64,000 bases of DNA, taken from assembly GCF_902713615.1 (NCBI RefSeq), contig NC_052149.1, positions 127,413,256 through 127,477,255 of the forward strand. Direction: 5' to 3'. Position 1 is the first letter of the stretch. Each line of letters opens with the position of its first letter. The position numbers were made by a program, and so were the translations under genes. Shown here piece after piece: positions 5,405 through 64,000 of the stretch. Below the pieces are notes generated by a model. It was not told where the DNA came from. It ran no database searches and was given only the letters and a program-made list of their open reading frames with translations. This DNA comes from Scyliorhinus canicula (lineage: Eukaryota).

Positions 5405-5453
5405 ATGATTTCAGCCATCCAGCTGATCTGGCCTCTGGCATTCTGCATCGCAG
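5405..5453 (+). CDS. IGKV: Ig kappa-type leader exon L1, cluster 1 (MISAIQLIWPLAFCIA)
   Basis: CACCATG start, hydrophobic signal peptide, phase-1 GT donor at 5454; splices in frame to the AG at 5638-5639. Confidence 0.93.
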
Positions 5454-5937: not shown

Positions 5938-5965
5938 CACAGTGATACAGAGCCTTACAAAAACC
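5938..5965 (+). other. 12-bp-spacer recombination signal sequence of V1
   Basis: CACAGTG (5938-5944), 12 nt, ACAAAAACC (5957-5965); exact consensus. Confidence 0.97.
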
Positions 5966-6320: not shown

Positions 6321-6359
6321 GGTTTTTGTACAGCCGCTGCACTGGAAGCTGTCAGTGTG
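6321..6359 (-). other. 23-bp-spacer RSS of J1
   Basis: GGTTTTTGT (6321-6329), 23 nt, CAGTGTG (6353-6359; reads CACACTG from the coding end, one mismatch, essential CAC intact). Confidence 0.93.
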
Positions 6360-6394
6360 GCTTACGTTCGGTAAAGGAACCAAGCTCAGACTGA
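6360..6394 (+). CDS. IGKJ: Ig kappa-type J segment, cluster 1 (LTFGKGTKLRL)
   Basis: FGxG motif directly after the 23-RSS; GTAAGT donor at 6395-6400, phase-compatible with the C exon. Confidence 0.95.
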
Positions 6395-8679: not shown

Positions 8680-10414
8680 AATTTGTCACTTTCCCTTGGA
8701 TTCCATCAGCTGTTAATTTTCAGACCCGTCTGTCATTGGAACTTTGTCAAAATCCTTGTAAAATCATGTTGTCAACATCAAACTCACTCCCTTCATCAGC
8801 CCTCCTTGTTCCCTCTTCAACAAATTCAATCACGTTAGTCAGACACGACCTTCCCTTAACAAATCTATGTTCACTGTCCTTGATTGAACTGTGTCTCTCT
8901 CAATGATGATTCTAATTTCTCTCAGAATTATTTCCAATAATGTTCCCACCACTGAGGTTAGACTGACTGGTCAGTAATGACTCAGTCTGTCCCTTCCTCC
9001 CTTTTTAAACAACGGTACAACATGATCAGTCCTCCAATCCTCCGACACCACGCCTGTAGTCAGAGAGGATTGGAAAATAATGGCCAGAGCCTCCGCTATT
9101 TCTTCCCTTGCTTCCCTTAGCAGCCTGGGATACATTTCACCCGGACCACTTTCAAAGATGATAAACACATTAATATCTCCTTTCTCACTATCTTTATCAA
9201 ATCCAATATTTCACAATTCTCTTCCTCCTGAACTACAATATCTGCTTTGTCCCTTTGCTTTGTGACAACTGATGTAAATTATTCATTAAGAACCATCTCC
9301 ATGTCTTCCACCTCCACACACGTTAAATTTTCTCTCTAATCGGCCAATTCATAAGACCATAAAATATAGGAGCAGAATTCGGCCACTCAGCCCATCAAGT
9401 CTGCACGGCCATTCAATCATCGTTGATATTTTTCTCATCCCCATTCTCCTGCCTTCTCCCCATAAACCCTGATCCCCTTATTAATCAAGAACCTATCTAT
9501 CTCTGTCTTAAAGACACTCAGTGATTTGGCCTCCACAACCTTCTGTGGCAGAGTTCCACAGATTCACCACCCTCTTGCTGAAGAAATTCCTCCTCATCTC
9601 TGTTTTAAAGGATTGTCCCTTTAGTCTGAGATTCTGTCCTCTGGTTCTAGTTTTTCCTACAAGTGGAAACATCCTCTCCACATCCACTATCCAGGCCTCG
9701 CTGTATCCTGTAAGTTTTAATAAGATCCCTCCTCCTCAAACCTCCAACGAGTACAGGCCCAGAGTCCTCAACTGTTTCTATACGACAAGTTCTTCATTCC
9801 AAGAATCATTCTTGTGGACCTCCTCTGGACCCTCTCCAAGACCAGCACATCCTTCCTTAGATACGGGGCCCAAAACTGCTCACAGTACTCCAAATGCGGT
9901 CTGACCAGAGCTTTAAAAAGTCTGAAATACATCCCTGGTCTTGTATTCTAGTCCTCTCGACATGAATGCTAACATTGCATTTGCCTTCTTAACTGCCGAC
10001 TGAGCCTGTACGTTAACTTGAAGAGAATCTTGAAGAAGGACTCCCAAGTCCCTTTGTGCTTATGATTTCCTAAACATTTCCTCATTTCGAAAATAGTCCA
10101 TGCCTCCATTCCACCTTCCAAAGTGCATATCCTCACTCTTTTCCACAGAGGGATGGAGTTTAAGACTAGGGAGGTTATGCTGCAATTGTATAAGGTGTTA
10201 GTGAGGCCACACCTGGAGTATTGTGTTCAGTTTTGGTCTCCTTACTTGAGAAAGGACATACTGGCGCTGGAGGGTGTGCAGAGGAGATTCACTAGGTTAA
10301 TCCCAGAGCTGAAGGGGTTGGATTATGAGGAGAGGTTGAGTCGACTGGGACTGTACTCGGAATTTAGAAGGATGCGGGGGGATCTTATAGAAACATATAA
10401 AATTATGAAGGGAA
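8680..10414. mobile_element. Nested CR1 fragments in the J-C intron (minus-strand pieces; the plus-strand piece from 10141 continues at 13027-13355)
   Basis: CR1 RT C-terminal peptides ([19 protein letters not shown]) and 3' tails. Confidence 0.75.
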
Positions 10415-13745: not shown

Positions 13746-13999
13746 ATTCAATTATGATCACTATTACCCAAATACTGCCCCACTGACACCCCTTCACCTG
13801 CTCAGATTCATTCCCTAAATATGGCCAAAACTACTCCTCTTGTTGGGATTGTTCTGTACTGGTTAAAAATGTTCCCCGGAATGGATTGTCAGAATTCTTC
13901 ATCATCGATAAATTGACACTGATTTGATCTCAGTTAATATTCGGGAATTTAAAATACCTTAAAATGGCAGCAAATAAAATTATTTATTTTCTCTTTCAG

Positions 14000-14328
14000 G
14001 CCGTGAGAATTCACAACCCACACTGACCCTGCTGCCCCCCTCCCCGGAGGAGGTCAAGACCAAGGGCACTGCCACCCTGGTGTGCCTTGCCAATCACTTC
14101 TATCCCGATGAGCTGGTGGTGGAGTGGAAGAAGGATGGTGCAGCCATTTCAGACGGGGTTCAGACCAGCAACTACCTGCGAGCTTCGGACAACACCTACA
14201 GCGTCAGCAGCCTGCTGACCCTCTCTGGCTCTGCCTGGGAGTCCAACGCCAGCTTCTCCTGTGCCCTCACCCACGTGAGCCTCTCCTCTGCCCTCAGCAA
14301 GAGCATCAGGAGATCAGAATGTGCGTAG
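14000..14328 (+). CDS. IGKC: Ig kappa-type constant exon, cluster 1
   Basis: Polypyrimidine tract and AG at 13998-13999; (S)RENSQPTLTLLPPSPEEVKTKGTATLVCLANHFYP...FSCALTH...RSECA*; C1-set Cys pair and penultimate Cys. Confidence 0.96.
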
Positions 14329-14576
14329 AGTGTTAGAGACAGTCCACAGAGGAGACACAACTTTAAATAGAACAGGGGTGAGCTGGGAGGACAAAGGTCA
14401 TTGTCAGCACTGAATTAAAACTCTCTTCCTCCTCGGGACTGAGTCTGAGACACTTCCAAGGGTCAAGGGTTAAGACACTTTATTGGAACAGAGTAGTAGG
14501 AGGTTTCCTCTGAATCTAACCCCGTGCTGTACCTGTTCTGGGAGAGTTTGTGGGACAGTGCAGACTCGTGATACCA

Positions 14577-14582
14577 AATAAA
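14577..14582 (+). terminator. Proximal polyadenylation signal of C1 (further AATAAA at 14759 and 14854)
   Basis: AATAAA ~250 nt after the C1 stop codon. Confidence 0.6.
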
Positions 14583-14863
14583 ACCTCTCTAAGACGTTGA
14601 AGACTGTCAGCTTTACAAAAATAATGTGACCCTCTGAAGTCTCTGCTTCAGGAAACCAGACCTCCTTCCTGCTCACCCTGCAGTTACAATTGAAGTTTTA
14701 GTCACTGTTTAAAGGGACAGGATTCTCATGTTATTGAGAAAATCTCCACAAGTGTTTTAATAAACCTCCTTTCTCTCTGTGAATTTCTCCAGCTTCCTCT
14801 GGCTGGGCTGTTTATTCAAGTCTTTCTTCTGACAATGTAAATCTGTAAAAGATAATAAACATT

Positions 14864-18800: not shown

Positions 18801-20260
18801 TGGTATGTCCAGCCTGTCGAGGAACTGTTTCATCTTCCAGTCCCTCGCCAGGGGCTCGGAGGTGTACAGTCCCCGAGTAAAAGTTTGCAAAGGCTCTGCT
18901 GATCTCGTCTGGAGCCATGACCACCCTACCATAGAATAGAATCTCTGCAGTGCAGAAGGAGGCCATTCAGCCCATCAAGTCTGCACCAGCCCTTGGAAAA
19001 TGCACCCTACCTAAGACCATGCTTCCACCCTATCCCTGTAACTCAGTAACCCCACCTAACCTTTTGGACACACTGGGCAATTTAACATGGCCAATCCACC
19101 TGACCTGTACATCTTTGGACTGTGGGAGGAAACCGGAGCACCCGGAGGAAACACACGCAGACACGGGGAGAAAGTGCAAACTCCACAGTCACCCAAGGTT
19201 GGAATTGAACCCAGGTCCCTGGAGCAGTGAGGCAGCAGTGCTAACCACAATGTCACTGTTCCCATCCCTCACCTGTGCTAACTTTCTTGTGGCGACCTTC
19301 CTCCTCAGCTGGTGTGCTGGTCGTCGACTGACCTTGTCTACGTGCTCCTAGAAGGCCCCTGTGTGGCAGAGCTGGTTCACTGCGTTCCCAGTGGAGAGCA
19401 GGTCAAATTCCATTTGTGTTTTTTTCCTCTCCACCAGCAGCTCCATGTTCCGGGCAGTGGAGTATCTCCGATCCATTTCCAATATGGAGTCGACCAGCTG
19501 CTGTCTAGCCACCCTTTCCTTCCTATTCTCTCAGAGATCTGTACACTATTATTTCCCCCCTGATCATTACCTTCAGTGCCTCTCAGAACATGGAGAGTGA
19601 GACCTCCCCGTTTTAGGCACAGGTTACATACGCATTGCTGGCTTGTGACATTCTTTCACAAAACACCTTGTCGGTGAGGAGGGCCGTGTCCAACCTCCGT
19701 AGGAGATGCTGGGCCCAACCCATCTCCAACTTCACATCCATGTAGTGTGGCATGTGGTCCGAGATGACTATTGCGAAGTATTCCGCCCCTACCATCCCTG
19801 GAAGCACCAACTTACCCACTACAAAGAAGTCGATACGGGAGTAGATTTTATAAACGTGGGAGAAGAAGAAGATGGTTGCAACCCCACAGGTCCAGCACCA
19901 CCCCCTCCCACCCCCCACCGCCCCCCTCCCCACCACCCCCCTCCCAGGGTTTGGTTCCTGTTCTAGAGCTGGATTTGTCTGTTTTTATGTCCTGTACGCA
20001 GCTGAAGTCTCCCCCCATGATGAGCTGGTAGGTCATGGGTCTCACCATTGTTTCTTTTAATGATGTCAGCATCATCCCATTTATGTTTACAAGCACCTCT
20101 TCCAGGATCCCACTAACCATCACGTATCGGCCTGCTGGGTCCATCACTGCGACCGTCGCTGTGAGTGCTTCTCGTTTGTAAATAATATGGCCACCCCCCC
20201 TCGCCCTTTTGTCAAAGCTTGTCTGATAAGTAAGTCTGTCCGACCTGTTTTGTTATGCTT
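15810..20260 (-). mobile_element. Degenerate L1-clade LINE ORF2 fragments, interrupted by a SINE (~18930-19260)
   Basis: EN (GGDF, ISDH), RT (RLGCPLSP, YMDD) and C-terminal fragments; poly(T) on plus at ~15812. Confidence 0.8.
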
Positions 20261-21155
20261 CTTGACGTAGCATAAGCTACTTCCTTGGGGGTAAGCTAAA
20301 TATCTTGGATAAGCTAAATATCCTATAACATCCTTCAGCACTATCCACAACTCCACCGACCTTCGTGTCATCTGCAAATTTACTAACCCATCCTTCTACA
20401 CCCTCTTCCAGGTCATTTATAAAAATGACAAACAGCAGTGGCCCCAAAACAGATCCTTGCGGTACACCACTAGTAACTGAAGTTACTGTGAAAGTCACCA
20501 CGCTATGGTGCCTGTTCGGGTACACGGAGGGAGAATTCAGAATGTCCAAATCACTTAACAGCATGTCTTTCAGGACTTGTGGGAGGAAACCGGAGCACTC
20601 GGAGGAAACCCACGCAGAGACGGGGAGAACGTGCAGACTCTGCACAGACAGTGACCCAAGCTGGGAATCAAACCTGGTGCTGTGAAACAACAGTGCTAAC
20701 CACTGCTACCCTGTATGTAGCACAGTGTTGGTGTAGGGGGAGGGGGTGGGCATGCAATACCATTCCCGCTGCCGGCAGAGCCGCTGACAGCTCGCTTTAA
20801 ACCTGATGCCCGGGGTTGTACAGGTGACCCCCACTCTGGCCCCAGCCAGCCCATCAGCTGTATGGGCCTCCAGCACAACCTGTCCCTTCTTTTCGGCCCC
20901 GATCAGTGTGTGTGTGTGGGAGGTGTATGTTAATGCGCGGCTGCAGCTTGTCAATCTTGCCAGTGTCCATCACGGGCCAGGCAAATCCAGCACCGTTTTT
21001 CATGGGCACGTGGCACCAGTGCTAGCCCCTCACCGGTAGAGGAATCGGTGCAGGTGCGGCGCCTATTTTCTTGTGGTAAAAGTCCACAGATTCTCCATTG
21101 GCGTCAACACTAAGTCGCAGAAACGGAGAATCCCGCCCGTTGTGTTTGGTCCTTT

Positions 21156-21854
21156 GGGCGGAATTCTCCGCTCCCGTGAAAAATCGGGAAGGCCGTCGTG
21201 AACTCGGCCGAGTTTCATGACGGCCTCGGAGGCCGCTCCCCTCACCTTATTCACCCCCACCCGGGGGGCTACGAGCGGCGCTCCATAACTCTCGGCCGCC
21301 GGGCCTTGACGCTTGCGTCAAGGTGGCGCACCGAGAATGATGCGACAGGGGCACCTAAGTGACGTCAGCCGCGCATGCGCAGGTTGGCCGGTTCCAATCC
21401 GCGCATGTGCGGCTGACGTCACGATGGCTGACGGCTCAAACCCGCGCATGCGCGGTTGCCGTCTTCCCCTCCGCTGCCCTGCAAGACGTGGTGGCTTGAT
21501 CTTGCAGGGCGGCGGAGGGGAAAGAGTGCGTCGCTTTGAGACGCCGGCCCGACGATCGGTGGGCACCGATCGCGGGCCAGTCCCCTCCCAAGCACGGCCG
21601 TGGTGCTCACTCCCCTCTCCACCCCCCACAAGCTTCAAACGAGCATTTGGCGCCCATGTTCACAACGGCAGCGACCAGGTCTGGTTGCCACCATCGTGAT
21701 CGGTCGCGAACGGCAGGCCGCTCGGCCCATTCGGGTCGGAGAATCGCCGGTCGTCGTGAAAAACGGCGAGCGGGACGCAAGGGGGGCGTGTCGTGAGTCG
21801 CCTGGCCCTCCCAGCGATTCTCCCACCCGGCGTGGGGAGCGGAGAATCGCACCC
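21156..21854 (+). mobile_element. Harbinger-type MITE
   Basis: TIRs GGGCGGAATTCTCCGCTCCC / GGGAGCGGAGAATCGCACCC (17/20 match), 3-bp TSD TTT. Confidence 0.85.
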
Positions 21855-23230
21855 TTTGTACTTCACAAAGGAATTTACCAAACACTGTGACTTGTCCAAA
21901 CCAGAATCTTTTATTGAGTCTGGTTTGGGAAGATAGCAAACTGATACTGTATAGAGCACGTTATCATGGAGTCTGCTAACTACTCCCATGGAATCTTCAT
22001 CCAGCACCGACCAATCACTTGTATGTCTTATTACCCCCTCAATCTTCTCCTGAAGGTGGTGGGATGTGTCTCCCTTATATGGGAGTCGCTGGTCACATGA
22101 TCTTGGTCTGGAGCCCCGTGTGCTGTATGTCGGTCCCTCTCGTTCTGGTGTGGCTGGTGTTTCTTTGCCTCGTGCGCTGCCGTCTTGACCGCTTGTTTCC
22201 CCTGGTTTCTGCCGCTTTTTGTCTCTTTCCAGCCTCTGGAGTTGCTGATGCTCAGCATTGTCTCTTGTGCTGCTGTTGGATAGGGTTGGGAGATACTTTT
22301 TCCCCTGTTCTTGCGGGCCACTTTGAGTAAAAGAGCCTAATTCCGGGTTTTTAGGAGGAGTGCCACCTTTCGTGCATCCACCCACCACATTCCCATCACC
22401 TGAATTCCCAAAATCCATATCCAAAAAATGCACGATTTGGATTCTCCGTCCCTGAGACGAAGTGTTGACCCTGGGGCAGGATTGGTGGACTTCCACAACA
22501 ACAAAACTGTCCCCGCACCGGGACCGATTCAGCGACTGTGGAGGAGCTAGCATCGGCGCCACGTGGAACACAATCGATTCCAATGAGAAACGGTGCCGGA
22601 TTCGCCGGGACTGTGATTGACACTCAGGAGGCTGACAAGCTGCAGCTGCATAAACACACTGCACTCCCCACACACACCATCACAGACAACAAGATGGCAG
22701 CAAGGACAACGGCGCGAGATTCACAAACGCCGAGCTAGAGACCCTCCATGATGCAGTGGAGGAGAGGTGGTCAAATCCTGTACCCCTGCCCGGGAAGGAG
22801 GCCGCCAGCCGCTGCCATTTGCCATTCCTGGACACAGGGGGTAGAGGCGGTCAGCGCCGTGGGCAACACCATCCAGACTGGCCACCAGTGCCGGATGAAA
22901 CTGCACAACCTCCTCAGGGCGGCCAGGGTGAGTAGGCAGCACTGTGGCCCTGGCATTAAACCCCGTCACCCACACCCGTAACTACCCACCCAACCCGGAA
23001 AGTGGCCGGACCCCCCCCCCCCCCCGCCTGCACCAACATGGCCGGGTGCCGTGGCCACTGAGCCACCAGCTACAAGCAGTATTGCTTGCATCGGACTGTC
23101 TAACACTGACGCTTTTTGTTCAACCCCCCTCCCCTAGGAGAAACCCGGCCATAGGAGCTTCAGGGAAATAGTTACACCAAAGACTGGAGATAGATGGGTA
23201 ACTGTAAGAGGGACTGGGAAGAAGCAGTCA

Positions 23231-23893
23231 GTGCAGGGACCCCCTGCGGTCGTTCCCCTGAGTAACAAGTATACCGTTTTGGATACTTGTGGGGGGGACG
23301 ACTTACCAGGGGTAAGCCATGGGGTACGGGCCTCTGGCACGGAGTCTGTCCATGTTGCTCAGAAGGGAAGGGGGGAAAGGAGTAGAACATTAGTAATTGG
23401 GGACTCAATAGTCAGGGGCACAGATAGGAGATTTTGTGGGAGCGAGAGAGACTCACGTTTGGTATGTTGCCTCCCAGGTGCAAGGGTACGTGATGTCTCG
23501 GATCGTGTTTTCCGGGTCCTTAAGGGGGAGGGGGAGCAGCCCCAAGTCGTAGTCCACATTGGCACTAACGACATAGGTAGGAAAGGGGACAAGGATGTCA
23601 GGCAGGCCTTTAGGGAGCTAGGATGGAAGCTCAGAGCGAGAACAAACAGAGTTGTTATCTCTGGGTTGTTGCCCGTGCCACGTGATAGTGAGATGAGGAA
23701 TAGGGAGAGAGAGCAATTAAACACGTGGCTACAGGGATGGTGCAGGCGGGAGGGATTCAGATTTCTGGATAACTGGGGCTCTTTCTGGGGAAGGTGGGAC
23801 CTCTATAGACAGGATGGTCTACATCTGAACCTGAGGGGCACCAATATCCTGGGGGGGAGATTTGTTAGTGCTCTTTGGGGGGGTTTAAACTAA
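23231..23893 (+). CDS. CR1 ORF1 C-terminal SGNH/GDSL esterase-like domain (5'-truncated)
   Basis: GDSIVRG, HIGTNDIG and DGLHLN blocks typical of CR1 ORF1 esterase. Confidence 0.85.
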   Translation: MQGPPAVVPLSNKYTVLDTCGGDDLPGVSHGVRASGTESVHVAQKGRGERSRTLVIGDSIVRGTDRRFCGSERDSRLVCCLPGARVRDVSDRVFRVLKGEGEQPQVVVHIGTNDIGRKGDKDVRQAFRELGWKLRARTNRVVISGLLPVPRDSEMRNREREQLNTWLQGWCRREGFRFLDNWGSFWGRWDLYRQDGLHLNLRGTNILGGRFVSALWGGLN

Positions 23894-26778
23894 TTCAGCA
23901 GGGGCATGGGAACCTGGATTGTAGTTTTAGGGTACGGGAGATTGAGAGTATAGAGGTCAGGAGCACAGATTTGACTTCGCAGGAGGGTGCCAGTGTTCAG
24001 GTAGGTGGTTTGAAGTGTGTCTACTTCAATGCCAGGAGTATACGAAATAAGGTAGGGGAACTGGCAGCATGGGTTGGTACCTGGGACTTCGATGTTGTGG
24101 CCATTTCAGAGACATGGATAGAGCAGGGACAGGAATGGTTGTTGCAGGTTCCGGGGTTTAGTTGTTTTAGTAAGTTCAGAGAAGGGGGCAAAAGAGGGGG
24201 AGGTGTGGCGCTGCTAGTCAAGGACAGTATTACGGTGGCGGAAAGGATGCTAGATGGGGACTCTTCTTCTGAGGTAGTATGGGCTGAGGTTAGAAACAGG
24301 AAAGGAGAGGTCACCCTGTTGGGAGTTTTCTATAGGCCACCTAATAGTTCTAGGGATGTAGAGGAAAGGATGGCGAAGATGATTCTGGAAAAGAGCGAAA
24401 GTAACAGGGTAGTTGTTATGGGAGACTTTAACTTTCCAAATATTGACTGGAAAAGATATAGTTCGAGTACATTAGATGGGTCATTCTTTGTACAATGTGT
24501 GCAGGAGGGTTTCCTGACACAATATGTTGACAGGCCAACAAGAGGCGAGGCCACATTGGATTTGGTTTTGGGTAATGAACCAGGCCAGGTGTTAGATCTG
24601 GAGGTAGGTGAGCACTTTGGAAACAGTGACCACAATTCGGTGACCTTTACGTTAGTGATGGAAAGGGATAAGTATACCCCGCAGGGCAAGAGTTATAGCT
24701 GGGGGAAGGGCAATTATGATGCCATTAGACATGACTTAGGATGTGTTGGTTGGAGAAGTAGGCTGCAAGGGTTGGGCACACTGGATATGTGGAGCTTGTT
24801 CAAGGAACAGCTATTGCATGTTCTTGATAAGTACGTACCAGTCAGGCAGGGAGGAAGGGGTCGAGCGAGGGAACCGTGGTTTACCAAAGAAGTGGAATCT
24901 CTTGTTAAGAGGAAGAAGGAGGCCTATGTGAAGATGAGGCGTGAAGTTTCAGTTGGGGCGCTTGATATTTACAAGGAAGCGAGGAAGGATCTAAAGAGAG
25001 AGCTGAGACGAGCAAGGAGGGGACATGAGAAGTCTTTGGCAGGTAGGATCAAGGAAAACCCAAAAGCTTTCTATAGGTATGTCAGGAATAAAAGAATGAC
25101 TAGGGTAAGAGTAGGGCCAGTCAAGGACAGTGGTGGGAAGTTGTGTGTGGAGGCTGAGGAGATAAGCGAGATACTAAATGAATACTTTTCGTCAGTATTC
25201 ACTCAAGAAAAAGATAATATTGTGGAGGAGAATGCTGAGACCCAGGCTATTAGAATAGATGGCATTGAGGTGCGTAGGGAAGAAGTGTTGGCAATTCTGG
25301 ACAAGGTGAAAATAGATAAGTCCCCGGGGCCGGATGGGATTTATCCTAGGATTCTCTGGGAAGCCAGGGAAGAGATTGCTGAGCCTTTGGCTTTGATTTT
25401 TAGGTCATCATTGGCTACAGGAATAGTGCCAGAGGACTGGAGGATAGCAAATGTGGTCCCTTTGTTCAAGAAGGGGAGTAGAGATAACCCCGGTAACTAT
25501 AGGCCGGTGAGCCTAACGTCTGTGGTGGGTAAAGTCTTGGAGAGGATTATAAAAGATACGATTTATAATCATCTAGATAGGAATAATATGATTAGGGACA
25601 GTCAGCATGGTTTTGTGAAGGGTAGGTCATGCCTCACAAACCTTATCGAGTTCTTTGAGAAGGTGACTGAACAGGTAGACGAGGGTAGAGCAGTTGATGT
25701 GGTGTATATGGATTTCAGTAAAGCGTTTGATAAGGTTCCCCACGGTCGTCTATTGCAGAAAATACGGAGGCTGGGGATTGAGGGTGATTTAGAGATGTGG
25801 ATCAGAAATTGGCTAGTTGAAAGAAGACAGAGAGTGGTAGTTGATGGGAAATGTTCAGAATGGAGTTCAGTTACGAGTGGCGTACCACAAGGATCTGTTC
25901 TGGGGCCGTTGCTGTTTGTCATTTTTATAAATGACCTAGAGGAGGGCGCAGAAGGATGGGTGAGTAAATTTGCAGACGACACTAAAGTCGGTGGAGTTGT
26001 AGACAGTGCGGAAGGATGTTGCAGGTTACAGAGGGACATAGATAAGCTGCAGAGCTGGGCTGAGAGGTGGCAAATGGAGTTTAATGTGGAGAAGTGTGAG
26101 GTGATTCACTTTGGAAAGAATAACAGAAATGCGGAATATTTGGCTAATGGTAAAATTCTTGGTAGTGTGGATGAGCAGAGGGATCTCGGTGTCCATGTAC
26201 ATAGATCCCTGAAAGTTGCCACCCAGGTTGATAGGGTTGTGAAGAAGGCCTATGGTGTGTTGGCCTTTATTGGTAGAGGGATTGAGTTCCGGAGCCATGA
26301 GGTCATGTTGCAGTTGTACAAAACTCTAGTACGGCCGCATTTGGAGTATTGCGTACAGTTCTGGTCGCCTCATTATAGGAAGGACGTGGAAGCTTTGGAA
26401 CGGGTGCAGAGGAGATTTACCAGGATGTTGCCTGGTATGGAGGGAAAATCTTATGAGGAAAGGCTGATGGACTTGAGGTTGTTTTCGTTAGAGAGAAGAA
26501 GGTTAAGAGGTGACTTAATAGAGGCATACAAAATGATCAGAGGGTTAGATAGGGTGGACAGCGAGAGCCTTCTCCCGCGGATGGAGGTGGCTAGCACGAG
26601 GGGACATAGCCTTAAATTGAGGGGTAATAGATATAGGACAGAGGTCAGAGGTGGGTTTTTTACGCAAAGAGTGGTGAGGCCGTGGAATGCCCTACCTGCA
26701 ACAGTAGTGAACATGCCAACATTGAGGGCATTTAAAAATTTATTGGATAAGCATATGGATGATAAGGGCATAGTGTAG
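23875..26778 (+). CDS. CR1 ORF2: APE endonuclease and reverse transcriptase, uninterrupted 967 aa
   Basis: YFNARSI, SETW, GDFN, SDH (EN); [14 protein letters not shown] (RT); no stops or frameshifts. Confidence 0.95.
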   Translation: MGGFKLIQQGHGNLDCSFRVREIESIEVRSTDLTSQEGASVQVGGLKCVYFNARSIRNKVGELAAWVGTWDFDVVAISETWIEQGQEWLLQVPGFSCFSKFREGGKRGGGVALLVKDSITVAERMLDGDSSSEVVWAEVRNRKGEVTLLGVFYRPPNSSRDVEERMAKMILEKSESNRVVVMGDFNFPNIDWKRYSSSTLDGSFFVQCVQEGFLTQYVDRPTRGEATLDLVLGNEPGQVLDLEVGEHFGNSDHNSVTFTLVMERDKYTPQGKSYSWGKGNYDAIRHDLGCVGWRSRLQGLGTLDMWSLFKEQLLHVLDKYVPVRQGGRGRAREPWFTKEVESLVKRKKEAYVKMRREVSVGALDIYKEARKDLKRELRRARRGHEKSLAGRIKENPKAFYRYVRNKRMTRVRVGPVKDSGGKLCVEAEEISEILNEYFSSVFTQEKDNIVEENAETQAIRIDGIEVRREEVLAILDKVKIDKSPGPDGIYPRILWEAREEIAEPLALIFRSSLATGIVPEDWRIANVVPLFKKGSRDNPGNYRPVSLTSVVGKVLERIIKDTIYNHLDRNNMIRDSQHGFVKGRSCLTNLIEFFEKVTEQVDEGRAVDVVYMDFSKAFDKVPHGRLLQKIRRLGIEGDLEMWIRNWLVERRQRVVVDGKCSEWSSVTSGVPQGSVLGPLLFVIFINDLEEGAEGWVSKFADDTKVGGVVDSAEGCCRLQRDIDKLQSWAERWQMEFNVEKCEVIHFGKNNRNAEYLANGKILGSVDEQRDLGVHVHRSLKVATQVDRVVKKAYGVLAFIGRGIEFRSHEVMLQLYKTLVRPHLEYCVQFWSPHYRKDVEALERVQRRFTRMLPGMEGKSYEERLMDLRLFSLERRRLRGDLIEAYKMIRGLDRVDSESLLPRMEVASTRGHSLKLRGNRYRTEVRGGFFTQRVVRPWNALPATVVNMPTLRAFKNLLDKHMDDKGIV

Positions 26779-27029: not shown

Positions 27030-30020
27030 CCCTAACCACCCCCACCTCAACCCCACTCTCACCCTCACCCCCACCCTCACCCTCACACCTACCCTCACCC
27101 CTATCCTCACCCCACCTCAACCCCACCCCCACCCTCACCCCTATCCTCACCCCCACCTCAACCCCACCCTACACCACCCTCACTCCCAAACTCACCCCCA
27201 CCTCAACCCCACCCCCACCCTCACCCCTATCCTCACCCCAACCTCAACCCCACCCTACACCACCCTCACCCCCACCCTCACCCCTATCCTCACCCCCACC
27301 TCAACCCTCACTCCTATCCTCACCCCCACCTCAACCCCACCCTACACCACCCTCACCCCCACCCTCACCTCTATCCTCACCCCACCTCAACCCCACCCTA
27401 CACCACCCTCACCCGCACCCTCACCCCTATCCTCACACCCACCTCAACCCTCACTCCTATCCTCACCGCCACCTCAACCCCACCCTACGCCACCCTCACC
27501 CCCACCTCACCCCCACCCTCACCCCCACCCTCACCCCATCCTCACCCCCACCTCAACCCCACCCTCACCCCCACCCCCACTCTCACCCTCACCCTCACCC
27601 CAACCTCAACCCCACCCTACACCACCCTCACCCCCACCCTCACCCCCAGCTCAACCCCACCCTACACCACCCTCACCCCCACCCTCACCGCCACCTCAAC
27701 CCCACCTCAACCCCACCCGACACCACCCTCACCCCCACCCTCACCCCTATCCTCACCCCCACCTCAACCCCACCATCACCCCCACCCTCACCCCCAACCT
27801 CACCCCCACCACAACCCCACCCTCACCCCCACCCTCACCCCCACCTCACCCCACCTCAACCTCACCCTCACCCCTATCCTCACCCCCAGCTCAACCCACC
27901 CTCACCCCCACCCTCACCCCCACCCTCACCCCTATCCTCACCCCCACCTCAACCCCACCCTACACCACCCTCACCCCCACCCTCACCCCCACCCACACCC
28001 CCACCTCATCTCAACCCCTCCCTACACCATCCTCACCCCCACCCTCACCCCTATCCTCACCCCCACCTCAACCCCACCCTACACCATCCTCACCCCCACC
28101 CTCACCCCTATCCTCACCCCCACGTCAAACCCACCCTACACCATCCTCACCCCCACCCTCACCCCTATCCTCACCCCCACCTCAGCCCCACCCTACACCA
28201 CCCTGACCCCCACCCTCACCCCTATCCTCACCCTACCTCAACCCCACCCTACACCACCCTGACCCGTATCCTCACCCCCACCTCAACCCCACCCTACACC
28301 ACCCTCAACCCCACCCTCACCCCTACCCTCACCCCCACCCTGACCCCCACCTCAACCCCAGCCTCACCCCCACCATCACCCCCACCCTCACTCCCTCCTC
28401 AACCCCACCCTCACCCCCACCCTCACCCCTATCCTCACCCCCAACTCAACCCCACCCTCACCCTCACTCCTATCCTCACCCCCACCTCAACCCCACCCTC
28501 ACCCCCACCTCAACCCCACCCTCACCCTCACCCCTATCCGCACCCCCACCTCAACCCCACCCTCACCCCCACCTCAACCCCACCCTACACCGCCCTCACC
28601 CCCTCCCTCACCCCCACCTCAACCCCACCCTACACCACCCTCACCCCTATCCTCACCCTCACCTCAACCCCACCCTCACCCCCACCCTCAACCCTATCCT
28701 CACCCCCACCTCAACCCCACCCTACACCACCCTCACCCCCACCCTCACCACCACCTCAACCCCACCCTACACCACTCTCACCCCCACCCTCACCCCTATT
28801 CTCACACCCACCTCAACCCCACCCTCACCCCCACACCCACCCTCACCCCCACCCTCAGCCCTACCCTCACCCCCACCTCAACCCCACCCTACACCACCCT
28901 CACCCCCACCCTCACCCCTGTCCTCACCCCCACCTCAACCCCACCCTACACCACCCTCACCCCCACCCTCACCCCTATCCTCACCCCCACCTCAACCCCA
29001 CCCTACACCACCCTCACCCCCACCCTCACCCCCACCTCAACCCCACCCTCACCCCCACCTCACCCCCACCCTCACCCCTATCCTCACCCCCACCTCAACC
29101 CCACCTCAACCCTCACCCCCACGCTCACCCCTATCCTCACCCCCACCCTCACCCCCACCCTCACCCCTATCCTCACCCCCACCTCAACCCTCACCCCCAC
29201 CCTCACCCCCACCCTCACCCCTATCCTCACCCCCACCTCAATCCTCACCCCCACCCTCAACCCTACCCTCACCCCCACCTCAACCCCACCCTACACAACC
29301 CTCACCCCCACCCTCACTCCAACCCTCACCCCTACCCTCACCCCTACCCTCACCCCCACCCTCACCCCTATCCTCACCCCCACCTCAACCCCACCCTACA
29401 CCACTGTCATCCCCACCCTCACCCCTATCCTCTTCACCCCCACCTCAACCCCACCCTACACAACCCTCACCCCCACCCTCACTCCAACCCTCACTCCAAC
29501 CCTCACCCCTACCCTCACCCCTACCCTCACCACTACCCTCATCCCACCCTCACCCCTACCCTCACCCCCACCCTCACTCCTATCCTCACCCCTACCCTCA
29601 CCCCACCCTCACCCCAACCCTCACACCACCCTTATCCCCACCTTCACCAAAACCCTCACCCCCACATCACCCTCACCCCCATATATCCTCATCCCCACCC
29701 TCGCCGCCACCCTCAACCCTGCACAATCTTCAACCCCACTCTCACCTCCAGCCTCACCCCCACTCTGCCCCCCACACCACCCTTACTCCCACCCTCACTT
29801 CAAGTCACACCCCCACCTTCACCCTCACCTCCACACCACCCTCATCCCCACCCCTGCACCACACTCACCCCAACCCTCATCCACACCATCTCACTCTCAC
29901 CTCCCCCCAACCCTCACACCCACACCACCCACACCTCATCCTTACCCCCACCACCCCCATTCCCCCCCACCCCCACACCCCCACCACAGCATCCTTCCCC
30001 CCCACCACCCCCACTCCCCC
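27030..30020. repeat. ~3-kb C-rich mixed hexamer repeat (CCCCAC/CCCTCA/CCTCAA)
   Basis: Directly visible; G almost absent from the plus strand. Confidence 0.95.
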
Positions 30021-51499: not shown

Positions 51500-52600
51500 G
51501 GTGAGGAAGCTGTGCTCTTGGGGTGAGGTTGACGCTCTGAATCCAGGCCCCCCTGGTGTTCCTGCCTCCCTGAATTTCCTCACCTCTACCTCCACGCCCT
51601 CACCTTGTGTCTCCTGGCTCCTCATCAGATCCATCAGTAGATTCATCCGCTGTGACCTATGGAGCTGCCTCACTAACCTCATTCTCCATTGGGTAACCCC
51701 TGCCAGGGGCAGATTGTGCAGAGAAGGCAGACAGTGACTATAAGCCACGCGCTCTGGAGGATATCGAAGTGCTCACCCTGATCAGTCCAAGCAGCAGAAC
51801 CTCATCTTCGCCCTTGTAGAGACATGTTGTATCTCTCCTCCACCATGGCCCTTGGATGACGGAGTGATATCATGAGCCACCTTTTCCTGGGATATCCGTT
51901 GTCTCTTGTGGTGGTTGTGTATCAGTGTAGATGCAATACAACTGAGCAAGCACTAGAGGGAGCACGGGAGAGCTATAAATACACAGGGACAGGAAGTGAG
52001 GACACACTTCACAGAAGGGGCCTTGGCAGCAGGACTGGCAGACACAGGCAGGCAGCATTTGAGGTAGCTGTAAGTTAAGCTCTGAAGACAGAACAAATTC
52101 ACAATAAAGCATCTTCTCCAACTTTGAGACTACGAGCTTCATTAAGACACAAGGAACAACACATCTCCCAGCAGCCAACCATCCAGCTGAGCTGGAGCCA
52201 TGAACAGCCTTGTCAACTGGGAGTGTCACAGGGTGCAGACATCATGGGAGCCAGGGTATCTCTCATAGATTTGCAGGATCTGTGTCTTGTGATCACAGAC
52301 TATCTGCACGTTCATGCAGCGAAGGCACTTTCTGTTCATGAATGCACCCAGCTGACCCTCTGGCTGTATGAGTGTATCTATGACACCCTGAATGTGTGGG
52401 AACCCAGCGATTAGTGTGAAGCCTCTGGCTATCTCAGCCTTGCTGGCTTCGTCCATCCGGAAATGATTGAATGTCCTGACCCATCTGGAGAGAGTGTCAG
52501 TGACCAGCTTGATACAACTGTGGACAGGTGAATGAGACACTCCACACTGATCCCCCACTGACCCCTGGGCCGATCCGGAGGCTAAATTGTTGAGGGTTAT
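51500..52600 (-). mobile_element. Harbinger-like DDE transposase remnant split by a solo LTR
   Basis: GFPHIQGVID, MNVQIVCDH, WLLGD-NGYP, ERYN and LHNL motifs. Confidence 0.75.
51907..52163 (+). mobile_element. Solo LTR
   Basis: TGT...ACA, TATAAA and AATAAA, TSD TCTC(T/C); splits the transposase reading frame. Confidence 0.8.
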
Positions 52601-53225
52601 GTGCCTGGCTGTCCACTTGGAGATAATCTACCCAATCATCTGGCCACAGTCCCCCGGGAAAGGCGGAGGGAGCCTGCTTCAGCTCGGGACCTCAGAAATG
52701 TTGAGGGAGCTGGATTACTGCCTGTGGATTCTGGCAGCAGGACAGTGGCATCTTCTGCAGACCCTTCAGCCCTCAATCCCTACTGGCCCTGTGCCTGCAC
52801 CTCTCCTCCCACAGGACGCTCCCTGGGACGCTGCCCGTAGACACCTAGCCCCCTCTCCCTTCTGCCCCTCTCCCCTCTTCAGAGGAAGTCTCACCAGCAG
52901 GGAATACAAACCCCATTTGCAGAGATGCAGACGGCAGTGTCTCCTGCACTGAAGGCTGAACTCACCAGAAATCCTCCCAGAGAGTTAATGAAACAAAAGT
53001 GTCCTTAATGAAAAGCTCCCAAAGCAAATCATCCAGCTGAAACCTCAGCAATAATCCAGCAGCAAACTCTCACCGAAACTGCTCACTATTCAAACTGCCA
53101 ATGCTCCCGTCTCCTGTTATCCCGCCCTGGAATGAGAAATCCAGCAAAACGGAATGTCCGTGCTGCCTGTGAGACGCCCCCAAAGTCACACAGGCAGCGG
53201 GAGATCAGATTCTGTACAATTGGCT

Positions 53226-53640
53226 GGGAACAGCAACGTAGAATTCTGAGCGGAGATAAACGGTGCCCTCTGGTGGAGGAGCCGGGAACAGCAACGTAGA
53301 ATTCTGAGCGGAGACAAACGGTGCCCTCTGGTGGAGGAGCCGGGAACAGCAACGTAGAATTCTGAGCAGAGACAAACGGTGCCCTCTTGTGGAGGAGCCG
53401 GGAACAGCAACGTAGAATTCTGAGCGGAAACAAACGGTGCCCTCTGGTGGAGGAGCCGGGAACAGCAACGGAGAATTCTGAGCGGAGAGAAACGATGCCC
53501 TCTGGTGGAGGAGTCGGGAATAGCAACGGAGAATTCTGAGCGGAGATAAACGATGCCCCCTGGTGGTCAGGCAGGGAACAGCAACGGAGAATTCTGAGCG
53601 GAGAGAAACAAAGTCCTCTGGTGAACGGACCGGGAACAAG
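53226..53640 (-). repeat. 58-bp tandem repeat (~7 units), each unit carrying a CTCF-like extended motif
   Basis: GGGAACAGC recurs at 53226, 53284, 53342, 53400 and 53458, with variants at ~53516 and ~53574; minus-strand cores CCACCAGAGGGCAC-like at 53263, 53321, 53379, 53437, 53495, 53553. Confidence 0.9.
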
Positions 53641-54334
53641 GACACCGAATCTTCAAACTCCAGCTGGGCCGATCAGGACTGATGTCAGCAAACATTTCTT
53701 CACTTGAAGACTTGTGGAAATCTGGAACTTTCTCACTGAAAAAAAGCTGTTGAAGTCAATTCAAAATGTTCAAACTGAGCTTGATGGGGTTTTCTTACAC
53801 AAGGTTATTGAGGGTCATGGAGCAAGCTGGAGAAATGGAGTTAAGATTCAGATTGACCATGATCTAATTGAATGGTGGGACAGGCTCGAGGGGCTGAATG
53901 GCCTCCTCCTGATCCCATGGGCGGGATTTTCCCCTACTTGGCGGGACGGAGTGGCTGTGAACCACTCCATCGTCGGGCCGCCCCAAAGGTGCAGAATCCT
54001 CCGCAACTTGAGCGGCTAGGCCTGCACTTTTAAGGGTGCGGAGTGGTTGGCGCCCGGCAGGCTGGCATGGAAGGCCTTTGGCGCCACGCCAGCCGGGGCC
54101 AAAGAGACTCCGCCGGCCAGCACGGGTCCGCGCATGCAGGAGAGCGTCAGCGGCTGCTGACGTCAACCCCGCGCATGCACAGGGTGGGGTTTCACCTACG
54201 CGTCTAACATGGCGGAGGCTGATGGTCGGCGCGTAGGAAAAGAGTGCCCCCATGGCACAGGCCCGCCCGCAGATTGGTGGGGCCCGATCACGGGCCAGGC
54301 CACCGTGGGGGCACCCTCCCCAGTGCCAGATTGC

Positions 54335-55910
54335 CCCACGCCCCACTGGAGGAGGGGACTCCACAAATATCCCCGTCCTCAATGATGGAGGAGCCCAGCA
54401 CTTCAGCCCAAAAGACAAGGCTGAGGCATTCACAACAATCTTCAGCCAGAAGGGCCGAGCGAATGATCCATCTTGTTCTCCTCTGGAGGTCTCCAGCATC
54501 ACAGATGCTCGGCTTCAGCCAATTGGATTCATTCCACGTGATATCAGGAAAAGGCTGTAGGCACTGGATACTGCAAAGGCTATGGGCCCTGACAACATCC
54601 CAACAATACAGTAGTACTGAAGATTTGTGCTCCAGAACATTGTCACACCCCTAGCCAAGTACAGCTACAACACTGGCATCTACCCAGCAATGTGGAAAAT
54701 TGCCCAGCTGTGTCCTGTACACAAAAAACAGGACAAAGCCAACCTAGCCAATTACCGCCCCATCAGTCCACACTCGGACATCAGCAAAGTGATGGAAGGA
54801 GTCATCATCAGCTATCAAACAGCACTTACTCAGCAATGACCTGCTCACTGACGCTCAGTTTGGGTTCCGCCAGGGTCACTCAGCTCCTGACCTCATTATA
54901 GCCTTGGACTAAAGCACTGAATGCCAAAGGTGAGGTGAGAGTGACTGCCCTTGACCGAGTTTGGCATCAAGGAGCCAAAACAAAACTGGAGTCAATGGGA
55001 ACATCACTGTAGGAGTTCCTCAGGGTAGTGTCCTAGATCCAACCATCTTCAGCTGCTTCATCAATGATCTCCCTTCCATCATAAGGTCGGAAGTGGGGAT
55101 GTTTGCAGATGACTGCACAATGTTCAGCACCATTCACGACTCCTCAGATATTGAAGCAGGACCTTGGCAGAGAAGTGGCAAGTTACAATCGCGCCACACA
55201 AGTGCCACGCAATGACCATCTCCTACAAGAGAGGATCTAACCACCACCCTTTGACATTCAATGGCATTACCATTGCTGAATCCCCACAATCAACATTGTG
55301 AGGGTTACCATTGACCAGAAACTGAACTGGACAAGCCACATTAATACTGTGGCTACCAGGGCAGGTTAAAGGCTAGGAATCCTACAATGAGTAACTCACC
55401 TCTTGACCTCCCAAAGCCTGTCCACCATCTACATGGCACAAGTCAGGAGTGGGATGGAATACTCCCACTTCCCTGGATGAGCGCAGCTCCAACAACACTC
55501 AAGAAGCTCAACACCATCCAGGACAAAACAGCTGCTTGATTAACATCCTATCCACCAGTTTAAACATTCACTCCCTACCCCGCAGACGCACAGTGGCAGC
55601 CTTATGTACCATCTACAAGATGCACTGCAGTAACTCACCAAGGTTCCTTCGACAGCACCTTCCAAACCCATAACCACTACCATCTAGTAGCACAGGAGCA
55701 GCAGATATATTGAAACACCACCACCTGGAGGTTTCCTTGTGTGACTCAAATCACATCATCCTGGGTCAAAATCCTGAACCTCCCTCCTTAACAGCACAGT
55801 GGGTGTACCTACACCACATGGACTCAGTGCTCAGTGAAGGCAGCTCACCACCACTTCTTCAGGGGCAATTAAGGATGGGCAATAAATGCTGATCCAGCCA
55901 GTGACACCCT
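54335..55910 (+). mobile_element. Degenerate CR1/L2-group LINE RT region (related pieces at ~2100-2540 and ~43445-44800)
   Basis: [27 protein letters not shown] remnants with stops and frameshifts. Confidence 0.7.
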
Positions 55911-59860: not shown

Positions 59861-60926
59861 GATGTTATGTGCTCTGTTATACGTAAAATTCTTCTCTCAA
59901 TAAAAATATTTTTAAAAATATGTACAAAACATCCCAATATGTTTCACAGATCAACAATAAGGGGAATGGAGGAGGGGATGGGGAGACTTTAGGACAATTG
60001 ATCAAAGGATTGGGTGAACGGATGGAGTTTGATGGAGGAGAGAGAGACCTGGAAAGGGGGAAGGATTAAGGGTGAGAGTTCAGAGAGCATAGAACCATAG
60101 AGTTCCTACAGTACAGAAGGAGGCCATTTAGCCCATCGGATCTGCATCAACCCTCTGAAAGAGAAACCAATGAGGCAGGCCCCCCACCCTATAACCCCAT
60201 CTAACCTGCACATATTTGGATACTAAGGGGCAATTTATCATGGCTAATCCACCTAACATGCGCATTTTTGGATTGTGGGAGGAAACCAGAGCACCCGGAG
60301 GAAACCATGCAGAGACAGGGAGAAAGTGCAAACTCCATGCAGGGCCTCAGCATCTGAAGGCTCTGCTGTCAATGGTGGGATGAAGGAAGTAGCGATGGGC
60401 AGGAGACCAGAGTCAGAGGATGGAAGGGTGAGGGAGGGAATGTGAATCTGCAGCAGGACACAGAGGTAGGGAGGAGTGAGGCCATGGAGGGAACTGGAGG
60501 TCAGTGAGGTCAGAGGTTTAGGTCAGCAACATCAGGATTAACAGTTCAGTGGTCAGGGGTAACAGATCAATGAGGTCAGGAGTTGTAGGTCAGCCAGGTC
60601 AGGGGTAACAGCTCAGGGTTAACAGGTCAATGAGGTCAGGGTTAACAGGTCAGTGAGGTCAGGGGGAGTGCTGGAATGGCACTTTGTGAGACAGGGTCTG
60701 GACCCACTGGATTTGGGACAAGTTGGAGATTATGAAGCGTGGATGAAGGAAGCCAGGAGACAACATTGGAATAATGGAGTTAGGAGGCAGGACAAGCCGG
60801 GATAAGGGTTTCTGTGCGCAAGGGGCTGATGTAGTGTAGAGACGGACAATGTTATGGAGATGGAAATAAGAAGCCTCTGTGGTGGACAGGATGCGGAGCC
60901 TGAAACTCAGCTCCTGGAGGACCAGG

Positions 60927-61478
60927 GGGTCCAGTGGGAAGGAAGCTCATGTTTACTGGTCCGTATTGGAGGGTCCAGTAGGAAGGAGTCCCATGTTTAC
61001 TGGTCCCTATTGGAGGGTCCAGTGGGAAGGAGTCCCATGTTTACTGGTCCCTATTGGAGGGTCCAGTGGGAAGGAGGCCTATGTTTACTGGTGGAGGGTC
61101 CAGTGGGAAGGAGTCCCATGTTTACTGGTCCCTATTGGAGGGTCCAGTTGGAAAGAAGCCCATGTTTACTGGTCCAGTGGGAAGGAAGCCCATGTTTACT
61201 GGTCCTATTGGATGGTCCAGTGGGAAGGAGGCCTATGTTTACTGGTCCCTGTTGGAGGGTCCAGTGGGAAGGAGGCCCATGTTTACTGGTCCCTATTGGA
61301 GGGTCAGTGGGAAGGAACCCATGTTTACTGGTCCCTATTGGAGGGTCCAGTGGGAAGGAGGCCCATGTTTACTGGTCCCTATTGAAAGGTCCAGTGGGAA
61401 GGAGTCCCTTGTTTACTGGTCCCATTTGGAGGGTCCAGTGGAAAGGAGGCCCATGTTTGCTGGTCCCTATTGGAGGGT
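60927..61478. repeat. 44-bp minisatellite, ~13 copies (about 3 copies at the paralogous site 3180-3320)
   Basis: Unit GGGTCCAGTGGGAAGGAGGCCCATGTTTACTGGTCCCTATTGGA. Confidence 0.92.
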
Positions 61479-62943
61479 ATAGTGGGATATGGACAGAACA
61501 GTTGATGTGCAGCAGTTTCTTTATGTTATAAATGTGTGATTGTCCATCTTTGGAGAAGTCACAAGATGGATAAAGGGGAACCTGTAGATGTAAAGAACAC
61601 GGAATTCCAAAAGGTATTTGATAAGGTGCCACATCAAATGTTACTACACAAGATACGATCTCATGGTGTATGGGGTAACATCTTGGCATGGATAATAATA
61701 ATAATCTTTATTAATGTCACAGGTAGGCTTACATTAACACTGCAATTAAGTTACTGTGAAAATCCCTGTTCGGGTACATGGATTCAGAATGTCCAATTCA
61801 CATAACAAGCACGTCTTTTGAGACTTGTGGGAGGAAACCGGAACACCCGGAGGAAACCCATGCAGACAGGGGGAGAATGTGCAGACTCCACACAGACAGT
61901 GACCCAAGCCGTGAATCGAAATCGGGACCCTGGCGCTGTGAAGCAACTGTGTTAACCGCTGTGATAATGGATTGGTTAGTTAACAGGAAGCAGAGAGAGG
62001 GGATAAATGGGCCTTTTTCAGCTTGGCAAACTGTAACAACTAGTGGAGTGTCACAGGGATCAATGCTGGAGCCTCAACTATTCACAATCTATGGGCGCAT
62101 TTTAACAGAAATGTCTCTAAGTGTCATTTGTGGCGGGTTTTGTTGGGAGTTTCCACCTGCCTCTGTCGGCGAGTTCCCACCGCTATCTAACCATACTTAG
62201 TCACCCTTTTGGGCTCTGGAGAGTTTTTCACCGGTTTACCTCACACTTAGAATTATTCTCATCACTGGGGAGCTGAACTCAGAGATCGAGCCTGAGTTCC
62301 CTGGAAAGGATGCCCCAATCTCAAAGTCAGCTTGTGGGTCGTCCCCCCCCCCCCCCCCCCCCCCCACCCACCCATGGCCAATGTCATCCCCCACACACAA
62401 ATGGGCACTACCCTACATTTTGGAGTATAACGTGGGTAAATGTGAACTTGTCCACTTTGGCAGGAAGAATAGAAAAGCAGTAAAGTATTTAAATGGAGAG
62501 AGATTGAGGAACTGGCTGCTACAGAGGAATCTGGGTGTCCTGGTACATGAATCACAAAACGTTAGTCTGCAGATCCAGCAAGTGATCAGGAAGGGAAATG
62601 GAATGTTGGTATTTATTACAAGAGGAACGGAAAATAAAAACAAGGGGGAAAAAATCCATTGAAGCTTTGAAGAATGAGACATGATCTTATTGAGACATAT
62701 CAGATTGTGAGTGGAGTTGATCGGGTGGCTATCAGGTGGTTGTTCCCTCTTCTGGAGGAGAGAGAGAAAGAGGAGGAGACAGAGGGACAAAAGAAAGATA
62801 AAGTGAAGGGGAAAGATAGAGAGAGACATGGAGAGAAAGAGAGGGGGTGAGTGCAAACATGGAACATTGCAGGAAGAACAAGGCAGAGAGAGAGAGAGAG
62901 AGACAGTCTGAGGAAGATAGTGAGGGTTGGAGTGAGTGGGAAG

Positions 62944-63037
62944 AGGAAGTGAAGGTGCTGACGTAGTGTCTCTGCCTCATACCATTTACATACTGAGGAA
63001 CGGGCAGTCAGACTCTCACAGGCTGCAGCTTTATAAA
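62944..63037 (+). promoter_or_regulatory. Ig light-chain V promoter, cluster 3
   Basis: Near-identical to 5251-5344; ATTTACAT at 62984-62991, TTTATAAA at 63030-63037. Confidence 0.7.
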
Positions 63038-63097
63038 GCAGAGCCCAGTGAAGGGAGAGTTTATCAGTAACCAGGCACAGGGACAGGAGCAGACACC

Positions 63098-63146
63098 ATG
63101 ATTTCAGCCATCCAGCTGATCTGGCCTCTGGCATTCTGCATCGCAG
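63098..63146 (+). CDS. IGKV: Leader exon, cluster 3
   Basis: Identical to the cluster 1 leader; GT donor at 63147. Confidence 0.9.
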
Positions 63147-63332
63147 GTACAAATCTCTCTCCTTCCACCTTGAATATTTTCCTGCTCTCCATTTCAATCC
63201 AATTCTACTGACTTGTGATTGAAGGGAAAATGCTGAAAGCAGAGGAACAGTCAGTGTCTCCAACAATATCTCATTGTACAGGCTCTTTCTGTGACAGTTC
63301 TTACTTCACTCTGTTTCTCTATTACCCCTCAG

Positions 63333-63631
63333 GTATCAGTGGAGACATCATCATGACCCAGTCTCCCCCGGTGCTGTCAGTGAGCATGGGCCAGACAATC
63401 ATCATCACCTGTACGGCCAGTTAGGATGCAACTGGTGATGTTGAATGGTATCAACAGCGAGAAGGTCAAAAACCCACTCTGCGGATCTATAATGCAGTGG
63501 GCCGATTCACAGGAACATCCAAACGATTCACCGGCAGTGGATCTGGAACACGATTCACCCTGACAATCAGCAATGTGCAGAATGAGGATGTCGCTGATTA
63601 TTACTGTCAGCAAGGAAGCAGCTTCCCCATA
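63333..63631 (+). pseudogene. IGKV: Ig kappa-type V exon, cluster 3, nonsense pseudogene
   Basis: ...TCTAS-TAG (63422-63424, at the Gln codon of V1/V2)[11 protein letters not shown]...[10 protein letters not shown]; otherwise in frame. Confidence 0.88.
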
Positions 63632-63659
63632 CACAGTGATATAGGGCCTTACAAAAACC
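63632..63659 (+). other. 12-RSS of V3
   Basis: CACAGTG, 12 nt, ACAAAAACC; exact consensus. Confidence 0.96.
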
Positions 63660-64000
63660 TCAATACACACAGCACCACCTGCTGTACTGACAAATCCCAC
63701 AGTTTATATAAAATATTATAGACACACAATCCCACCTCCTGTACTGACACATCCCACAGTTTTATATTATATAATAAACACAAGAAAGGAAACTGTACAA
63801 ATGATTCTCACCGTCCACTACACACTCCAGTCCCTGTGGTGTCCACAGCTCACTGAAGGCCTCAAGTTTCCATCTTACTCTCCATGTCCACATATGAAGA
63901 GCAGCTGAAAGATTTATGATCCAAAGATAGAATTCTAAACTCTCCCAACAAAACACAGAGACATTGAGAGAAACAGAGAGTGAGAAAGAGTGAGAGAGAA

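Follow-up and report, generated by a model that had tools for sequence, protein, structure and literature searches.

The window analysed here, a 64-kb stretch of Scyliorhinus canicula DNA, contains three kappa-type Ig light-chain clusters that were confirmed by Pfam (Table 1), with the J and C segments of cluster 3 lying beyond the window. The V and J segments of cluster 1 are separated by ~0.4 kb. A BLAST search with the cluster 1 J region detected no cluster 2 J at 45800-46330, and the homology of cluster 2 to cluster 1 ended at 46098, ~175 bp short of the expected J position. Translation of the cluster 3 V exon revealed an in-frame stop codon in CDR1 at 63422-63424, making this V a probable pseudogene despite its seemingly intact RSS (63632/63651). 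Self-BLAST of the window showed that homology among the clusters is confined to the V regions (5127-6247 against 62833-64000 and 46705-46098) and the C regions.

Table 1. Positions of the Ig light-chain segments, the tandem array with its two-part CTCF-type sites, and the adjoining repeat copy in the 64-kb window
Feature	Position	Strand	Details
Cluster 1 V exon region and 12-RSS	5519-5965 (V 5519-5945)	+	V-set 5.6e-18; heptamer 5938, nonamer 5957
Cluster 1 J and 23-RSS	6321-6397 (J 6360-6397)	+	Nonamer 6321-6329, heptamer 6353-6359
Cluster 1 C exon	13978-14325	+	C1-set 3.3e-22
Cluster 2 C exon	40756-41103	-	C1-set 2.1e-21
Cluster 2 V exon region	46330-46746	-	V-set 2.6e-11; RSS heptamer/nonamer 46330/46311
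58-bp minisatellite, 7.1 units	53226-53638	- (motifs)	Tandem Repeats Finder, in-register units, self-BLAST
Unit 6 two-part site	53263-53293	-	Core 19.51 bits
Unit 5 two-part site	53321-53351	-	Core 19.51 bits
Unit 4 two-part site	53379-53409	-	Core CCACAAGAGGGCAC, 17.63 bits
Unit 3 two-part site	53437-53467	-	Core 19.51 bits
Unit 2 two-part site	53495-53525	-	9-mer TGCTATTCC (7/9), core CCACCAGAGGGCAT, 15.95 bits
Unit 1 two-part CTCF-type site	53553-53583	-	9-mer TGCTGTTCC (8/9, gap 5), 8-nt spacer, core CCACCAGGGGGCAT, 19.95 bits
Unit 0, degenerate first unit	~53611-53668	-	CCTTGTTCC, 8 nt, TCACCAGAGGACTT; core 5.5 bits, 9-mer 5/9; aligns with other repeat copies
Interspersed-repeat copy, 5' part, old; runs into the array	53600-53925	-	Aligns with three other copies in the window
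Cluster 3 V exon region	63212-63640	+	V-set 2.6e-10; RSS 63632/63651

A tandem array with a 58-bp period lies in the 16.5-kb head-to-head spacer between clusters 2 and 3, at 6.5 kb from V2 (minus strand) and 9.6 kb from V3 (plus strand), which agrees with its placement between two light-chain clusters in the initial annotation. Tandem Repeats Finder returned for 53226-53638 a period of 58, 7.1 copies, 90% matches, a score of 635 and 0 indels, the arrangement of a minisatellite or VNTR, in which units of 10-100 bp are joined head to tail at one locus. Read in register on the minus strand, units 1-6 consist of TGCT(G/A)TTCC, exactly 8 nt, and then CCAC(C/A)AG(A/G)GGGCA(C/T), reproducing the pattern described in the initial annotation, and the unit that it had singled out as the best (unit 1) had the highest core score. 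The seventh unit (from 53262), described there as degenerate, retains the 9-mer and then passes into unrelated flank, with no core present. All three minus-strand frames are open across the array; a coding repeat was ruled out, since a 58-bp unit shifts the frame at each repeat and simply contains no stop codons. Words of the array were present in runs from two samples of the same species from two studies, so the array is not an assembly artefact. The CpG observed/expected ratio was 0.85 in the array versus 0.27-0.29 in both flanks, a value that fits either youth or germline hypomethylation and decides nothing between them. The four CpGs of the unit were also found in the single unit of a related species.

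CTCF core motifs were scored on both strands of the 64-kb window with a JASPAR MA0139.1 count matrix whose column sums (908-913) were consistent, and the upstream module was scored with the 9-mer printed in PMC5498337 in place of the JASPAR extended matrices MA1929/MA1930. This scoring, proposed as a check in the initial annotation, gave 15.95-19.95 bits for the six cores, against a maximum of 25.5 bits. The six were the top matches on either strand of the window, with p-values per position of 1.0e-7 to 2.0e-6 from the exact score distribution, and the next match had 15.3 bits (47573-47591). The upstream 9-mer matched the published TGCAGTTCC at 8/9 positions in five units (TGCTGTTCC) and at 7/9 in unit 2 (TGCTATTCC), and the gap from it to the 19/20-mer core was 5 nt in all six units, equivalent to 8 nt to CCAC. 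Among the other CTCF-like matches in the window, the upstream-module match never rose above 5/9; other strong CTCF sites that might frame the clusters were rejected, none having the upstream module and the best being that at 47573-47591.

These values agree with the architecture described for CTCF sites in other vertebrates. The core of the M2 probe in PMC5498337 is the reverse complement of TGCAGTTCC, and M2 is placed 5-6 bp upstream of M1 in that study; the combined motif spans 33/34 bp (PMC3368268), and the mouse HS-94 site has a 5-nt gap to its 20-mer core, equal to that of the array (PMC11417384). Both parts of a two-part (M1+M2) site, a core match and a same-strand upstream module at the known spacing, were found in each of the six units, as had been claimed from the sequence. 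The array consensus and the M1 gel-shift probe of PMC5498337 have 11 consecutive letters in common (CAGAGGGCACC), as do the array consensus and the core of the mouse HS-38 insulator (CCACCAGAGGG, 11 letters; PMC11417384), so the CTCF match does not depend on the matrix alone. The joint probability of a core and a 9-mer carrying no more than one mismatch, at one or other of the permitted spacings, was 3e-11 to 4e-10 per position, and at the top score ~0.25 such matches are expected per 4-Gb genome. The pairing of core and upstream module is beyond chance. Because the six sites trace to a single event that was copied, the effective sample is one, and that one is a very good two-part site.

To place the array within the genome, we examined contigs from four whole-genome runs positioned on 52200-54600 at a likeness of at least 85%. 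The adjacent segment 53820-54600 attracted ~19,000-26,000 contigs per deep run and 3,320 in the shallow fourth run (X9), whereas 53253-53657 attracted few or no contigs at this likeness in the four runs. Summed depth in the bins of the array was 0-9, as in the single-copy flanks, bearing in mind that depth is not copy number; the single-locus reading rests on the contrast in contig placement between the array and the adjacent repeat. The array lies at a single locus and is not a dispersed satellite; dispersal was what the initial annotation had named as speaking against its proposal. Summed contig depth at 53820-54600 was 10^4-10^6 in every shark run compared, including those under two other species labels, which places this repeat among the most abundant in these genomes; the pile-up is sharply bounded at 53857 and 53915.

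The unit is related to the interspersed-repeat copy that runs into the array. Alignment of 53930-53540 (minus strand) located the other copies of this repeat in the window at 13360-13030 (minus), 9367-9691 (plus) and 188-537 (plus), and the head of the copy at 53857-53915 attracts many thousands of contigs. In the same alignment, unit 0 is the segment from which the 58-bp unit derives, in the form that it has within the interspersed repeat itself. Core scores formed a series from the homologous segments in the repeat copies near 13.1 kb and 9.6 kb (-0.15 and 2.7 bits) through unit 0 (5.5 bits) and the related species (11.05 bits) to the array units (16-20 bits), and the upstream 9-mer rose in parallel from 3-4/9 in the repeat copies to 5/9 in unit 0 and the related species and 8/9 in the array units (7/9 in unit 2). 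These scores show that the segment in the ancestral repeat is only faintly CTCF-like. The core reads CCACCAG in this lineage and begins with CTAC or CTGC in the related species and the other repeat copies. A site dispersed by transposition would be present in the element's other copies and spread with them, which was not found here, and the words of the array are not abundant. A reverse-transcriptase fragment (54955-55212) and a weak DDE match (52229-52627) lie in the surroundings.

The better 9-mer (TGCTGTTCC) sits at the 3' end of the unit, so that its placement 8 nt before a core arises only by head-to-tail duplication; because the placement needs duplication, the two-part grammar is partly produced by duplication itself. 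A short TGTTCCC repeat, whose copies are 58 bp apart, marks the borders of the duplication and could have seeded slippage. We propose that the array probably formed as a single-locus minisatellite, by tandem amplification of 58 bp from within an old copy of the interspersed repeat. A faint proto-site in a mobile-element remnant could, through one core substitution and a slippage duplication, have become a full two-part site, and the outcome is six co-oriented, near-consensus M1+M2 sites at a pitch of 58 bp.

Comparison with a related species, which the initial annotation had suggested as a check on conservation, revealed a different state of the locus. One 722-base contig (run X10, contig 10), with an ordinary depth of 13.8, covers 52698-53269, then 13 letters, then 53632-53787, bridging the locus with both flanks at ~94% identity and one unit between them. 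Copy number is accordingly 7.1 units here versus ~1.2 in the bridging contig, which constitutes VNTR variation between species. The single unit has a core of 11.05 bits and an upstream module matching at 5/9, and its core reads CTACCAG versus CCACCAG here, a change at a nearly invariant position of the matrix. This evidence consists of one short-read contig. Since other contigs of run X10, at low depth, also reach bins 53415-53657, a further allele or locus with a larger number of units may exist in the related species.

Units 0 and 1 have 79-86% identity to the remaining units, a divergence above the ~6% divergence of the flanks between species, so part of the array may predate the species split and the relative may have contracted. 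On this comparison, the ancestor may already have had a few units, with contraction in the related species instead of expansion here. Copy number and site quality are not kept between the species, whether by contraction or by expansion. Variation inside the array was also compared between motif and non-motif columns, with 4/23 motif columns and 11/35 of the others variable (Fisher p = 0.36) and a 14-nt non-motif block of the unit also invariant. Selective conservation of the motif columns was rejected as not significant, and the earlier claim that both modules survive while other positions vary did not hold. The inner units are simply young, and special preservation of the modules has no support.

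Several properties of the sites bear on their recognition by CTCF. The core plus upstream motif is bound alike by lamprey, chicken and human CTCF (PMC5504073), and in skate, CTCF motifs are found at domain boundaries with an inward orientation bias (PMC10115646). By analogy with these bracketing species, the array units should be recognised by shark CTCF, and from their motif content they are predicted to bind it well. The array cores have no CpG at the methylation-sensitive positions. The CTCF footprint is ~40 bp (PMC3368268) and the pitch of the array is 58 bp, so several of its sites could be filled simultaneously. In other systems, the upstream module increases affinity and is required for enhancer blocking, and extra copies of a site add insulation (PMC12885311, PMC11417384), the latter in mouse (PMC11417384). 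The N-terminal side of CTCF stalls cohesin and blocks enhancers more strongly (PMC12885311, PMC11417384). With the motifs on the minus strand, this side is turned toward clusters 2 and 1, in keeping with the direction assigned in the initial annotation, and the array, if occupied, would form a multi-site directional barrier facing cluster 2. Cohesin extruding from clusters 2 and 1 would then be expected to stall before reaching cluster 3.

The best explanation overall, which we consider probable, is a repeat-derived, copy-number-unstable minisatellite that is likely to be CTCF-competent, a property predicted from its motifs. That the array is instead a dispersed satellite or an artefact of assembly, unconnected with this locus in particular, might be suspected in a window rich in tandem arrays and directly beside a very abundant repeat. 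This is extremely improbable: contigs are almost absent on the array and number tens of thousands on the adjoining repeat, which largely rules out a dispersed satellite, the array words recur in two samples from two studies, and the orthologous locus with the same flanks is present in the related species. It is conceivable, though rather unlikely, that the array is an ordinary minisatellite in silenced, repeat-rich chromatin whose CTCF-like motifs are unoccupied in vivo. The array is embedded in transposon remnants (54955-55212, 52229-52627 and the abundant repeat from 53820), several substitutions that distinguish the units convert CpG to TpG or CpA, as expected of methylated DNA, and motif matches by themselves predict binding poorly (PMC5504073). 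However, among mammalian sites, those that combine a near-consensus core with an upstream module are bound most reliably and constitutively (PMC3368268), the array cores are free of CpG at the positions where methylation matters, and the CpG ratio of the array is unlike that of the methylated flanks.

We judge it distinctly unlikely that the array is a maintained inter-cluster insulator, that is, a multi-site CTCF barrier built and kept by selection between neighbouring light-chain clusters, which would limit loop extrusion, the action of enhancers and that of RAG to a single cluster. The six co-oriented sites are of the two-part kind typical of strong insulators (PMC12885311, PMC11417384), they sit in the spacer between divergent V genes with the motifs facing one of the two recombining units, the array retains much CpG, and shark rearrangement is confined to one minilocus by an unexplained mechanism (PMC2435157). 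The joint match of core and module is far above chance, and its improbability keeps selection for CTCF binding conceivable. Against maintenance, the related species' contig shows a single unit whose core is weaker and which lacks a good upstream module, so that conservation between related species was not observed in this one short-read contig, and the motif columns show no excess conservation. Nor does the element recur at equivalent positions within the window: the tail-to-tail interval between clusters 1 and 2 (14-41 kb) contains no CTCF site above 12.1 bits, no equivalent site lies beside the other V genes, and self-BLAST detected no paralogous array beside other clusters in the window, the 52-54 kb region having no matches. 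With a stop codon in V3 and no detectable J in cluster 2, there is little here to protect, and the short-range joining of V and J in cluster 1 needs no scanning barrier. Returning to the repeat-derived minisatellite, barrier activity, if any, would more likely have emerged recently as a side effect of repeat turnover than represent a conserved feature of Ig locus organisation, since neither the copy number nor the quality of the motifs is maintained in the related species.

A broader idea is that the multi-cluster Ig loci of sharks recurrently recruit repeat-derived minisatellites with CTCF sites as directional boundaries between neighbouring clusters, which we regard as a speculative suggestion with a low chance of being correct. 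If it were true, each V-J-C minilocus would have its own loop domain, which would explain rearrangement within the minilocus, and changes in array copy number would tune the strength of insulation.

In mammals, clustered CTCF motifs lie between units of antigen-receptor loci at the IgH IGCR1 and 3' CBEs and at Igk Cer/Sis, where they face the recombining unit. These elements are conserved and bound by CTCF, have deletion phenotypes, and consist of a few dispersed sites with no minisatellite. The shark array resembles them in placement and orientation but differs in that conservation fails and its CTCF sites are predicted only. Closer in structure are human VNTRs with two-core CTCF motifs, such as the HRNR repeat, which likewise has a two-part match in each unit (PMC10234305). 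In HRNR, the predicted sites scale with copy number, and copy-number change has been proposed to alter local folding (PMC10234305). Multi-site occupancy is predicted from sequence in both cases; the HRNR repeat lies in coding sequence and varies among humans, whereas the shark array is non-coding, repeat-derived and located between Ig clusters, with variation seen between species.

DXZ4 and its mouse homologue (PMC3491370) likewise present co-oriented tandem CTCF sites as one architectural element with fast sequence turnover. In DXZ4, kilobase-sized units form an array of tens to hundreds of kilobases, and CTCF binding has been demonstrated and occurs specifically on the inactive X, whereas the shark array is 0.4 kb of 58-bp units with predicted sites. 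Rodent SINE B2 likewise provides a CTCF-type site descended from a mobile element, in which the site is part of the element consensus and was spread by transposition (PMC3368268, PMC10982698). The shark array differs from SINE B2 in that the other repeat copies have no site (-0.15 to 2.7 bits), and local point change with tandem duplication takes the place of transposition.

Sharks keep V(D)J joining and expression within a single minilocus out of many that are nearly identical, and a strong, directional, multi-site candidate CTCF element between two clusters provides a concrete and testable candidate for minilocus confinement. Among the leading matches of a literature search, we found no work on CTCF in shark Ig loci. 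Apart from Ig biology, the locus illustrates in miniature how a full two-part CTCF site can arise. This significance is tempered by the lack of the array in the related species, by the partly defective neighbouring clusters, and by the well-established occurrence of CTCF sites in tandem arrays and transposon-derived sequence in mammals.

Other repeats were observed around the clusters. A 2.9-kb C-rich array (CCACCC-type) with periods of 6, 12, 23 and 57 and a GC skew near -1 occupies 27036-29980, between clusters 1 and 2. A 68-bp x 7 tandem repeat with 91% matches (40107-40587) immediately follows the C exon of cluster 2, and no 68-bp array was reported in the homologous flank of cluster 1 (14484-14854). 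A 44-bp tandem repeat lies ~2 kb upstream of both V1 (3180-3318) and V3 (60927-61487), with 3 copies at V1 and ~13 at V3, within a duplicated upstream region (3012-3318 against 60753-61069, 84%), and represents a second minisatellite of variable copy number that is linked to the cluster unit. An unbroken 969-aa open frame on the plus strand at 23869-26775, between clusters, matched Exo_endo_phos (3e-20) and RVT_1 (4e-36) and is possibly an intact LINE ORF2.
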